In this document: positions 53,301 through 56,300 of the stretch, one piece after another
Numbering within the stretch: the stretch's first letter is position 1
Layout of the letters: every line of letters begins with the position of its first letter
Assembly (NCBI GenBank): GCA_002269645.1
Contig: NIVC01000431.1
Coordinates: 58,242-122,241 of the forward strand
DNA: 64,000 nucleotides
From: Macrostomum lignano
Lineage: Eukaryota
Direction of reading: 5' to 3'
Notes under the pieces: generated by a model
What the model was told of the DNA's origin: nothing
Database searches by the model: none
The model's input: the letters and a program-made list of their open reading frames with translations, nothing else
Program-made: the position numbers and the translations under genes

Positions 53301-56300
53301 GCTTATTACAATTTGTAAATTATTGAATAACTCAATCATCTGCAAACCTGTGGTTGATAAGTTGGTTATTGGTTGTTGGTTGGTTGGTTGGTTGGTTGGT
53401 TGGTTGGTTGGTTGGTTGGTTGGTTGGTTGGTTGGTTGGTTGGTTGGTTGGTTGGTTGGTTGGTTGGTTGGTTGGTTGGTTGGTTGGTTGGTTGGTTGGT
53501 TGGTTGGTTGGTTGGTTGGTTGGTTGGTTGGTTGGTTGGTTGGTTGGTTGGTTGGTTGGTTGGTTGGTTGGTTGGTTGGTTGGTTGGTTGGTTGGTTGGT
53601 TGGTTGGTTGGTTGGTTGGTTGGTTGGTTGGTTGGTTGGTTGGTTGGTTGGTTGGTTGGTTGGTTGGTTGGTTGGTTGGTTGGTTGGTTGGTTGGTTGGT
53701 TGGTTGGTTGGTTGGTTGGTTGGTTGGTTGGTTGGTTGGTTGGTTGGTTGGTTGGTTGGTTGGTTGGTTGGTTGGTTGGTTGGTTGGTTGGTTGGTTGGT
53801 TGGTTGGTTGGTTGGTTGGTTGGTTGGTTGGTTGGTTGGTTGGTTGGTTGGTTGGTTGGTTGGTTGGTTGGTTGGTTGGTTGGTTGGTTGGTTGGTTGGT
53901 TGGTTGGTTGGTTGGTTGGTTGGTTGGCTGCCTAAACACTAGTTTAACAAATACTCTATCCGCAGATCTTCCCTACTGCACTCTGAACGATCTGGCACGT
54001 TGCGGCATTGACATCAGCGAGAATCCCGGTAAGACCTATTCGAATTTGAATCATTTGCCATTTTCTCTCCGGGTTTTTCTCTCCGTGTCGCTGTAAATTA
54101 GCTGCGAAACCGCTAATCTCTGCCGCCCCAGGCATCAACTGGCTCAGCAAGTGCAGCTGCGGCAAGCCGTGCGTTGAGTCCGACTACCGCATCCAGTCGG
54201 TGGTGCAAACGCCTCGCTCATCGCTGCTGTCCCGCCTGCAGACCATCAAGGAGCGAGACGCGCTGGCTCGAAACACTGACATGGTGGAGGACGCGAACCT
54301 GGTGCAGCAGTGGGCCTTCCTGCGCGAGACCAACCGAACAGCTTTCGCCACTCTCAGCCGGCTGTCGGCCATTCTGTCTCGCTTCAGCTCGAAGTTCGCA
54401 GAGACGGTGCACGGCCTGCGGCGCATGGCGGTCACCTGGCACGTGCGCTACGTGCAGAACCAGCACTACGGCTCCCAATGCGCCAACATCGTCATCGAAA
54501 TCAGCGAGGCCCTCAGCAACATGCGCCAGAAAGCGCAGGAGGTGCGCGAGTTCAGCGGCTCGCTGTTCTTCGAGACCAGCTTCAATTATCCCAACGACGA
54601 CTTTCTGTTTCGCGTTGTGAACTTGTTCTTCAAGTACAGTCCGGAGAACATCAGGGCCGAGTTCGACCTGTTCGACCTCACCAGATTCTATCAGGATCTG
54701 ACGGCCTTCGAGATTTCCTTCGACAAGTTCAAGGTTGCCAAGTGCAACAGCTTGGAGAACGGAGGTGGCGCCGCCGGTGACCAGCACAGGTCGCTCATGC
54801 AGGAGGACAGCGCCATCAAGATTCTGCTGTCCGATTTGCAGAGTCTGTCGTTGGAGTTTTTAAGAATATTTACCGACATTTACAGCAACAATGAAGCTAT
54901 TCGACAGGCCTACCCGTCGTCAAGGTCCAAGATCAAGCAGACGGCTTCGCCTAAGTGAGTCTTCGCATTGGTGCAGCTGACTGTTTCCAGAATTAAGTTG
55001 CTGTGAATCTGAGAACGTGTTGTACTTTGAAGTTTGGAGGGTTGAAAATGCTTTCGGTTGTGAAGCTTTGCAATCAGGAGGGTGCTGCAATCAGGAGGTT
55101 GCTGCAATCAGGAGGGTGCTGCAATCAGGAGGATGCTGCAATCAGGAGGGTGCTGCAATCAGGAGGGTGCTGCAATCAGGAGGGTGCTGCAATCAGGAGG
55201 GTGCTGCAATCAGGAGGGTGCTGCAATCAGGAGGGTGCTGCAATCAAGAGGGTGCTGCAATCAAGAGGTTGCTGCAATCAGGAGGGTGCTGCAATCAAGA
55301 GGTTGCTGCAATCAAGAGGGTGCTGCAATCAAGAGGTTGCTGCAATCAGGAGGGTGCTGCAATCAGGAGGGTGCTGCAATCAGGAGGGTGCTGCAATCAG
55401 GAGGGTGCTGCAATCAGGAGGGTGCTGCAATCAAGAGGTTGCTGCAATCAGGAGGGTGCTGCAATCAAGAGGTTGCTGCAATCAAGAGGTTGCTGCAATC
55501 AAGAGGTTGCTGCAATCAAGAGGGTGCTGCAATCAAGAGGTTGCTGCAATCAGGAGGGTGCTGCAATCACTAGGGCGCAGGTTCTAACGTCAAAATCCAG
55601 TAGCTGGAGACTCAGCTATTCTATTTATGGGCACAGGTGACTTCAAAGAGCTCAGTAAGAGCTCAATTCTGACAGCAAAAATTATCCATTTCTTGCTGCT
55701 AGTCTAATTAAAAGTCGGAATCCTTGGTCTAATAATTACCGGGGCACGAGGCTGATGAAGATTGGACAGAGGCTTGATGAGAGACTGATGTTGATGGCCG
55801 GTGAGAGGCCGCAGGGCTTGTCTTGAGTACCGGTCAGCCTCCGTTTTCGAATGTCAAGGACCGGAAATTGGCTGTAGATAGGGGGGGGGGGTAGCATGAC
55901 CAAAGACAAGAGTCTCTGGTTATTTGAGTCCTTTTTTATAAGAATAGTCAGTCTGAACTCTCCCTGCGGCTTCATCGGCTTGTCCAGACTCTTTTGTAAA
56001 TAGATCAAGCGATACTCAAGAACTCAACAGAACTCATGAATTCAAGGCTGTTTAAAGCAACAAGAAGTGGCAAGGAACTTGAATAATTATGAAATAGTTA
56101 ACGGGCGTTTCATAGAATGGACTGGGATACCGGATGTTATAGAGCAAACGGAACAGGTGAACAGAGTAGAGAGGAGAATCGCAGGTAGAGTTAAAAAACT
56201 GGTTGTAAATTTTTTCCATTCATCCTGGATTCTTTAGCCAAGAGGTGAAATCTGACAAGATCTGGCGGCAATAAAAATACTCCAAATCCGACAAGATATG

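Follow-up and report, generated by a model that had tools for sequence, protein, structure and literature searches.

A predicted DEG/ENaC gene of 13 exons

The 64,000-nucleotide stretch of Macrostomum lignano DNA analysed here (contig NIVC01000431.1, positions 58,242 to 122,241; hereafter the window) contains a 13-exon gene on the forward strand, from 38310 to 62207, which was delineated by mapping database models of 854 and 769 residues onto the window and in which every intron is GT-AG (Table 1). The gene encodes a member of the DEG/ENaC family whose eighth exon carries a long, predicted helical domain at the place where acid-sensing ion channels (ASICs) have their knuckle. The locus surrounding exon 8 is eukaryotic and rich in introns and repeats. 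Exon 8 and the six exons upstream of it (exons 2-8) have GT-AG borders and give an uninterrupted frame once joined. With exon 8 as the query, phmmer was run exhaustively against 1.84 billion representative proteins and returned four matches, one of them 100% identical across all 273 residues. This match and its two cluster mates are the M. lignano protein, present in UniRef as A0A1I8G4G9 and A0A1I8J0A9 under the name 'Amiloride-sensitive sodium channel' and in GenBank as PAA83169.1, 'hypothetical protein BOX15_Mlig002427g1'.

The original prediction had assigned the gene to the DEG/ENaC family from its letters alone, and profile searches bear this out. The joined exons matched Pfam ASC (PF00858) with E = 6.6e-30 and 105 bits (cut-off 23.6) over profile positions 58-374 of 455, and the full model P0005 matched with 5e-29 over positions 60-389. 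ASIC1 structures were matched at E ~1e-9, with an alignment that reaches the CSCGKPC region of exon 8 opposite cvcempcnltry. ASIC1 was the best match among sequences of the Protein Data Bank (PDB), which does not imply placement in the ASIC clade; a survey found no ASICs in the platyhelminths sampled (PMC9949801). The FPAVTLCN motif is present after the first transmembrane helix (TM1), and the 14 Cys residues that precede the insert, 4 in the finger and beta-ball and 10 in the thumb scaffold, align with those of ASIC1 up to CxCxxPC. Hydropathy peaks were found only at residues ~19-43 and 719-742 of 854, the latter being the highest, and AlphaFold2 (AF2) placed membrane helices at 9-44 and 715-744. 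Exon 1 encodes …CRHQHGSAV…, in which an HG dipeptide precedes the TM1 Trp by about 20 residues; trematode relatives have TNG there, and the region lies outside any profile. These results show that the gene belongs to the DEG/ENaC family and that its extracellular scaffold (FPAVTLCN, 14 Cys, thumb and palm strand beta10) is intact. Between TM1 and FPAVTLCN, exon 2 also encodes a low-complexity Ser/Ala-rich stretch of ~55 residues (41990-42160), which is missing from all trematode orthologues.

Exons 9-13 were located only through the database gene models. A Pfam scan of the three forward frames of 55560-64000 gave no ASC match, searching the window by tblastn with the C-terminus of chicken ASIC1 gave chance matches only, and regular expressions for N.L.L.V, G.S....E and [ST].HG found nothing convincing. 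Between 55560 and the window end, a span of 8.4 kb, no canonical knuckle, beta11 or TM2 exon was present. One minus-strand look-alike from the tblastn search (14861-14920) was dropped; it lies in duplicated sequence near a retrotransposon. The three database models of the gene do not agree with one another. At the junction near 59140-59150, models P0005 and P0006 read '…SPNSGGSQ', matching the window. PAA83169.1 reads '…SPKTQSSGGSQ' there, which the window sequence cannot encode, so this model probably derives from a second copy or allele that is nearly identical. Model P0001 also uses other frames downstream and a different 5' end (34812-35037) compared with P0005 and P0006.

Exon 8 carries a long insert at the predicted site of the knuckle

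Exon 8 is real coding sequence, because its GC content at third codon positions is 0.81 (0.51 and 0.39 at first and second positions, against 0.467 for the whole window) and 1 of 20,000 base shuffles stayed open. Both of its splice sites are good (acceptor ccgccccag|GC, donor CCTAA|gtgagt), and the codon bias of the insert is that of the coding sequence in neighbouring exons. The Tyr that follows the thumb motif (54185-54187) is succeeded by 256 open codons up to the donor. Exactly two Cys codons follow this Tyr in exon 8, at 54479-54481 (C450) and 54743-54745 (C538), and the insert contains a single N-x-[ST] sequon, NRT at 54332-54340; both counts agree with those first reported.

In published ASIC1 structures, beta10 is followed by ~22 residues that form the knuckle (helices alpha6-alpha7) and then by ENILVLDIFF, which is beta11. 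In chicken ASIC1 (2QTS), 31 residues lie between the Tyr of CNVTRY and the N of ENILVL, and the Tyr-to-strand length is similar in ASIC2, ASIC5 and ENaC beta, so the yardstick of about 30 residues adopted in the original prediction was sound. Its figure of ~255 intervening residues corresponds to the 256 open codons of exon 8 but falls short of the full separation, since exon 9 adds a further 77 residues and the next palm strand lies ~335 residues from the Tyr. The residues right after the Tyr align with RYGKELSMVKI of ASIC1, inside the Pfam match (to profile position 389), and AF2 models residues 352-361, just past the Tyr, as a strand. We take this strand to be the ASIC1 palm strand beta10 (ASIC1 topology, Jasti et al. 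2007). Because the preceding strand aligns with beta10 and the next palm strand follows, the insert appears to replace the knuckle helices, which is the site first proposed for it. By family topology the insert is predicted to be extracellular, because the only two hydrophobic membrane segments flank the whole region; hydropathy detected no membrane-like segment inside the insert. An extracellular location fits the Cys pair and the sequon.

The exon 8 donor, AA|GTGAGT, overlaps an in-frame stop (AAG TGA, with TGA at 54956-54958). Unspliced read-through at 54953-54958 would end the protein just after the helical domain and yield a form without TM2. A reading in which the exon 8 frame ends at this TGA, as a truncated protein or a C-terminal replacement, was rejected: the orthologues run on into a strand and TM2.

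The domain is shared with trematode orthologues

The three remaining phmmer matches were proteins of Dicrocoelium dendriticum, Opisthorchis viverrini and Paragonimus westermani (E = 1.6e-5 to 7e-5, ~32% identity), and a profile search added Echinostoma caproni and three assemblies with trematode-like sequences. The 1.84 billion representatives yielded no DEG/ENaC of a nematode, insect, mollusc or vertebrate and no member of another family. A word-indexed protein search with exon 8 alone gave no match; the same search with the concatenated channel exons also gave none and was probably flooded by the Ser/Ala-rich stretch. The N-terminal half of the trematode proteins matches Pfam ASC (E = 1e-11 to 1e-27), and the same insert then follows at the same site. 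In the complete ones a strand-like segment and a membrane helix come after the insert, with the pattern S[YFL]VT.TI…RLVRLESVQ…VSGL..AFL…LLDL.

Both insert Cys, C450 and C538, are invariant in all sequences. The motif WAFLRE[ST]NRTAF (W394-F405) is invariant in the four aligned proteins, from Macrostomum and three trematodes; in P0010, a fifth sequence that covers it, the segment reads WAFLREANRTAF, so that the x of WAFLRExNRTAF varies and NRT is kept. Across Macrostomum and the three trematode proteins ~45 insert columns are invariant, of which 23 are still invariant across all 10 sequences, and beyond the Cys pair and the motif ~20 more insert positions are invariant. The insert cores of M. 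lignano and the trematodes are 24-26% identical, compared with 35-36% for the ectodomain core and 23-28% for the beta11-TM2 tail; the trematodes compared with one another reach 55%, 69% and 61%, respectively. The insert diverges only slightly more than the channel core.

In Echinostoma caproni (UZAN01049190.1) the insert core (5902-6681) is a single exon that starts just before the WAFLRE helix, and the exons for the strand (14437-14530) and TM2 (15623-16018) lie kilobases further on. Echinostoma and M. lignano share the position of the intron that precedes TM2. Unlike the Echinostoma insert exon, exon 8 of M. lignano also carries the thumb end and beta10. At the N-terminal edge of the domain an intron has therefore been acquired or lost, whereas the one preceding TM2 is conserved.

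Because the trematodes share the insert, its site, the Cys pair and the sequon, the domain predates the Macrostomorpha/Neodermata split and is under purifying selection, within the same gene in independent genomes. We considered whether it could nevertheless be an artefact of annotation or assembly. The long frame would then be an intron left unspliced, a separate gene nested in or fused to this one, or a last exon that stops at the donor-overlapping TGA, and the real protein would be canonical or truncated. The in-frame TGA at the donor and the disagreement of the models downstream (P0001 versus P0005 and P0006, and 'KTQS' versus 'NS' at the junction) would be compatible with such an error. 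The order of channel N-terminal half, insert, strand and TM2 recurs, however, in the Dicrocoelium and Paragonimus predictions, and in Echinostoma these parts are consecutive separate exons; the window from 55560 onwards offers no canonical exons for an alternative protein, and the insert has the codon bias of its neighbours. The exon is also part of all three database models, and its equivalent stands between the channel halves in independent genomes, as its proposed membership of the channel gene would predict.

The insert could also be a tolerated, lineage-specific expansion of a surface loop, a spacer without function of its own. It belongs to no recognisable domain family, species differ in the length and sequence of its N-terminal part and of several internal loops, and the M. 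lignano protein has other low-complexity additions, in exons 2 and 9. Such a spacer would hardly be expected to keep the invariant columns described above, which include both Cys, the sequon and the 12-residue motif, nor would its core remain detectable at E ~1e-5 across the deepest rhabditophoran split and be as similar among trematodes as is seen here, and its helices are predicted confidently. Given this conservation and its recurrence in independent genomes, we regard the spacer explanation as improbable and the artefact explanation as highly improbable. The domain appears to be neither an annotation artefact nor a recent insertion.

Predicted fold of the domain

AF2 modelled the insert alone, from an 8-sequence alignment, as all-helical with a mean predicted local distance difference test (pLDDT) score of 62.5 and a predicted template modelling score of 0.51. 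In the full-length model the insert was the most confident part, with 10-residue block means of ~70-88 and helices at 382-400, 402-441, 448-474, 490-501, 504-512, 516-535 and 548-586; the ectodomain was poor (mean pLDDT 49.8). The two longest insert helices are amphipathic (z = 2.5-2.7), in keeping with the helical character that had been read from the residue pattern. The fold class is predicted to be an elongated up-and-down helical bundle.

No known family was recovered for this bundle. Pfam found nothing above noise in the insert alone (best E = 0.02, below cut-offs), the family profile had no match among PDB sequences (best E = 1), and in Foldseek, the structure search suggested for the insert alone, nothing reached E <= 1e-3 with the insert model and a single match did so with the full model (7e-4). 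The Foldseek matches were generic helical bundles with no specific relative among them: designed four-helix proteins, BAR/I-BAR domains and trypanosome receptor bundles, mostly at a root-mean-square deviation above 9 A. At the search sensitivity used, the insert appears not to be homologous to the inserts of characterised DEG/ENaC subfamilies, and homologous inserts occurred only in uncharacterised trematode orthologues. The suspected novelty thus holds with respect to Pfam, PDB sequences, PDB folds and characterised subfamilies, although the domain is not unique to M. lignano. Our literature search found no description of the insert or of its clade. The gene itself is already public under generic names, and what it contains is an undescribed, ancient, lineage-specific domain on a known channel scaffold at an unprecedented site.

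Exon 9 extends the insertion with 77 residues, 25 of them basic and 6 acidic, that are largely absent in trematodes. AF2 models this segment as a single long helix (645-686, pLDDT 79-92) linking the insert back to the palm. All three frames of exon 9 are open, and the exon overlaps an ATG-initiated open reading frame (ORF) of 84 codons that uses a different frame (59100-59354).

The segment after the insert and an atypical pore helix

After the insert, a strand-like segment and a membrane helix follow at the expected spacing. Exon 10 aligns with the trematode segment S[YFL]VT[VLM]TI…RLVRLESVQ. The N.L.L.V strand that the original prediction named as the next one in ASIC-type channels is absent as a literal motif, and the candidate strand in exon 10 reads otherwise. 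At the positions that align, by eye, with the G-A-S selectivity filter, M. lignano has S-L-F and the trematodes have A-F-L. Near the position of the TM2 Glu (60695-60770), M. lignano has His and the trematodes have Asp. Some platyhelminth DEG/ENaC homologues form separate, highly diverged clusters (bioRxiv 10.1101/2022.06.28.497943). The M. lignano protein appears to be a divergent member of the family with an unproven pore, and channel function is an assumption.

A putative regulatory head in place of the knuckle

Taking these data together, we favour with moderate confidence a model in which a DEG/ENaC scaffold bears an ancient flatworm helical domain in place of the knuckle, likely as a regulatory or sensor head, on what is perhaps an atypical channel or modulatory subunit. 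The head would form an elongated helical bundle atop each subunit; the Cys pair probably staples it, and the break between helices in WAFLRE-NRT-AF is its probable site of glycosylation. In ASICs, beta10 and beta11 extend from the subunit top down to the linker between beta11 and beta12, which governs desensitisation, and then to TM2. The head would sit between these two strands. A regulatory or sensor role would be its most likely one, because the head would be spliced directly into the palm strands that run down to the linker and TM2. A rigid, glycosylated bundle, one per subunit atop the trimer, could bind a ligand, a component of the matrix or cuticle, or the copy on the neighbouring subunit, and this binding could bias the conformation of the palm and gate or anchor the complex. 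The present data do not tell the tether, sensor and oligomerisation ideas apart. The pore helix has no GxS filter; instead of a classical amiloride-sensitive Na+ channel, the protein may represent an atypical channel or act as a modulatory subunit.

Several observations weigh against this model. The assignment of the post-insert segments as homologues of beta11-TM2 is suggested by position, length and hydropathy. Profile positions ~390-455 of ASC, which cover beta11-beta12, the filter and the TM2 Glu, were unmatched in the C-termini of M. lignano and its orthologues, and a PDB sequence search and hhalign of the aligned tails returned no ASIC or ENaC. TM2 of the whole clade lacks the GxS filter and the conserved Glu, which weakens the gating part of the model. 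The exon joins rest on the database gene models and on conservation, the AF2 models were built from alignments of 8-10 sequences only, and a strongly basic segment such as that of exon 9, extracellular by topology, is unusual. Finally, no orthologue was found in schistosomes, cestodes or planarians, which reflects either a patchy distribution or incomplete sampling.

Some of these points favour the main rival, in which the protein is no longer an ion channel and its ectodomain has been re-used as the scaffold of a surface receptor, an adhesion protein or a structural protein, with the head as the working part and the helices as anchors. The last ~65 positions of the ASC profile are unmatched in M. 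lignano and in every trematode orthologue, the tail searches are empty, the filter and Glu cannot be aligned, HG is NG in trematodes, and the bundle is similar, though in overall shape alone, to surface-receptor bundles that Foldseek matched weakly. On the other hand, TM1, FPAVTLCN, all scaffold Cys and the palm strands are retained, the second membrane helix lies at the canonical distance, and M. lignano has an HG dipeptide before the TM1 Trp; moreover, divergent DEG/ENaC clades have been reported that escape profile detection and yet belong to the family (bioRxiv 10.1101/2022.06.28.497943). We therefore consider the loss of channel function possible but rather doubtful.

A bolder extension of the regulatory-head model would make the insert a new extracellular domain family and the knuckle the control point of a receptor specific to flatworms, with a crown of three heads binding a ligand or matrix partner and driving the palm strands; the atypical pore would then form a new functional class, either a channel not selective for Na+ or a signalling protein that does not conduct. 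This is speculative and we think it unlikely. The knuckle is not known to play a ligand or tether role in any DEG/ENaC.

The stimuli of DEG/ENaC proteins are diverse (protons, peptides, force and proteolysis) and act through lineage-specific elaborations of one ectodomain, which nearly always lie in its finger or thumb. Placed in the knuckle, between the palm strands leading to the gate, a conserved domain of 250-330 residues would provide a new site of control; together with the non-canonical pore helix, it may set a functionally distinct clade apart. As far as found, this clade is confined to flatworms, among them liver and lung flukes, and lacks a vertebrate counterpart, which makes it a potential selective marker or drug target. 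Macrostomum lignano is a tractable model, with RNA interference and transgenesis, for the role of the protein.

Other features of the window

Nearly every intron of the gene contains a long and very regular tandem array, with periods of 4, 10, 17, 20, 23, 36 or 48 bp, up to 142 copies and 94-100% match; several of these arrays create long spurious ORFs (Table 1). The window further holds two sets of retrotransposon remains, an exon-like ORF with a carbohydrate-binding WSC domain that belongs to another gene on the opposite strand, and a pair of duplicated segments.

Table 1. Coordinates of the gene, its predicted domain and other features in the window
Feature	Position	Strand	Remarks
Exon 1	38310..38371	+	start codon, cytoplasmic N-terminus, HG before TM1; donor CGATT|gtgagt; in P0005/P0006 at 100% identity
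Exon 2	41936..42211	+	TM1, species-specific Ser/Ala-rich stretch, FPAVTLCN (at 42174); Pfam ASC match begins here
Exon 3	43004..43168	+	finger; GT-AG, in frame, aligns with ASIC1 finger
Exon 4	43885..44033	+	CQLSNKRQC…GQCYT, beta-ball and its Cys
Exon 5	44361..44545	+	palm/beta-ball strands; block best conserved versus trematodes
Exon 6	49320..49419	+	Cys-rich thumb, first half
Exon 7	53966..54028	+	thumb
Exon 8	54132..54954	+	thumb end CSCGKPC 54152-54172, predicted beta10 54185-54214, then helical insert; 274 open codons
Predicted helical knuckle-replacing domain	54215..54954	+	~247 residues; conserved core from ~54296; motif 54311-54346
Exon 9	59148..59378	+	77-residue Lys/Arg/Gln-rich segment; acceptor caag|C, donor AG|gtgacg; in P0005/P0006
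Exon 10	60177..60268	+	candidate palm strands beta11-beta12; equivalent exon in Echinostoma
Exon 11	60695..60862	+	second transmembrane helix and start of cytoplasmic tail
Exon 12	61121..61151	+	short tail exon
Exon 13	61994..62207	+	C-terminal tail; stop TGA 62205-62207
Intron tandem arrays	41450-41898, 44090-44298, 45982-46290, 46645-47844, 50450-51316		
Intron tandem arrays	51761-52552, 53361-53927, 55069-55569, 58502-58902, 60312-60532		
Retrotransposon remains	17571-20265, 2822-4252	+	aspartyl protease (retroviral-type), reverse transcriptase, RNase H; separate RNase H ORF
WSC domain ORF	15093-15626	-	E = 8e-14
Sequence similar to the WSC ORF	near 24731-24796	-	
Duplicated segments	14696-14974 and 16910-17317	-	~70% protein-level identity

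Comparison with known systems

Like the knuckle of ASIC1 and ENaC (alpha6-alpha7), the M. lignano segment follows the thumb Cys motif and beta10 and precedes the strand that leads to TM2, and it is likewise predicted to be extracellular, at the top of the subunit and helical. It differs in length, with ~325 residues and at least 7 predicted helices against ~22 residues in ASIC1, in having its own Cys pair and glycan sequon, and in showing no sequence similarity to the knuckle.

The GRIP (gating relief of inhibition by proteolysis) domain of ENaC is a lineage-specific regulatory module inserted in a DEG/ENaC ectodomain, where it controls gating. It is inserted in the finger, is largely beta, undergoes furin-type cleavage and is confined to vertebrate ENaC, in contrast to the flatworm insert; neither the exhaustive search nor Foldseek gave a sequence or fold match between the two. 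In the invertebrate FMRFamide-gated Na+ channel FaNaC, a ligand pocket is formed by additional ectodomain segments close to the subunit top, which makes a ligand-sensing role for added ectodomain modules plausible, and FaNaC (PDB 7YVB) was among the sequence matches. The FaNaC insertions are in the finger and much shorter, and its canonical pore is kept. The nematode degenerins MEC-4 and MEC-10 carry added extracellular regulatory and Cys-rich modules with a proposed link to the matrix (the tether model). Their additions lie before or within the Cys-rich regions and not at the knuckle, and no nematode protein was recovered by the exhaustive search. Those M. lignano DEG/ENaCs that have been assayed electrophysiologically belong to another clade, the FaNaC-related branch, and did not respond to the peptides tried (PMC9234716).

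The true orthologues are CAH8541868.1 (Dicrocoelium), OON18927.1 (Opisthorchis), KAA3681085.1 and KAF8562613.1 (Paragonimus) and the Echinostoma caproni protein, all of them uncharacterised. They differ from the M. lignano protein in a longer, variable N-terminal part of the insert, in their longer loops, and in lacking the basic exon 9 segment and the Ser/Ala stretch, whereas they share with it the ectodomain, the insert site, the Cys pair and WAFLRE[ST]NRTAF, together with a similar strand-TM2 tail and pre-TM2 intron.

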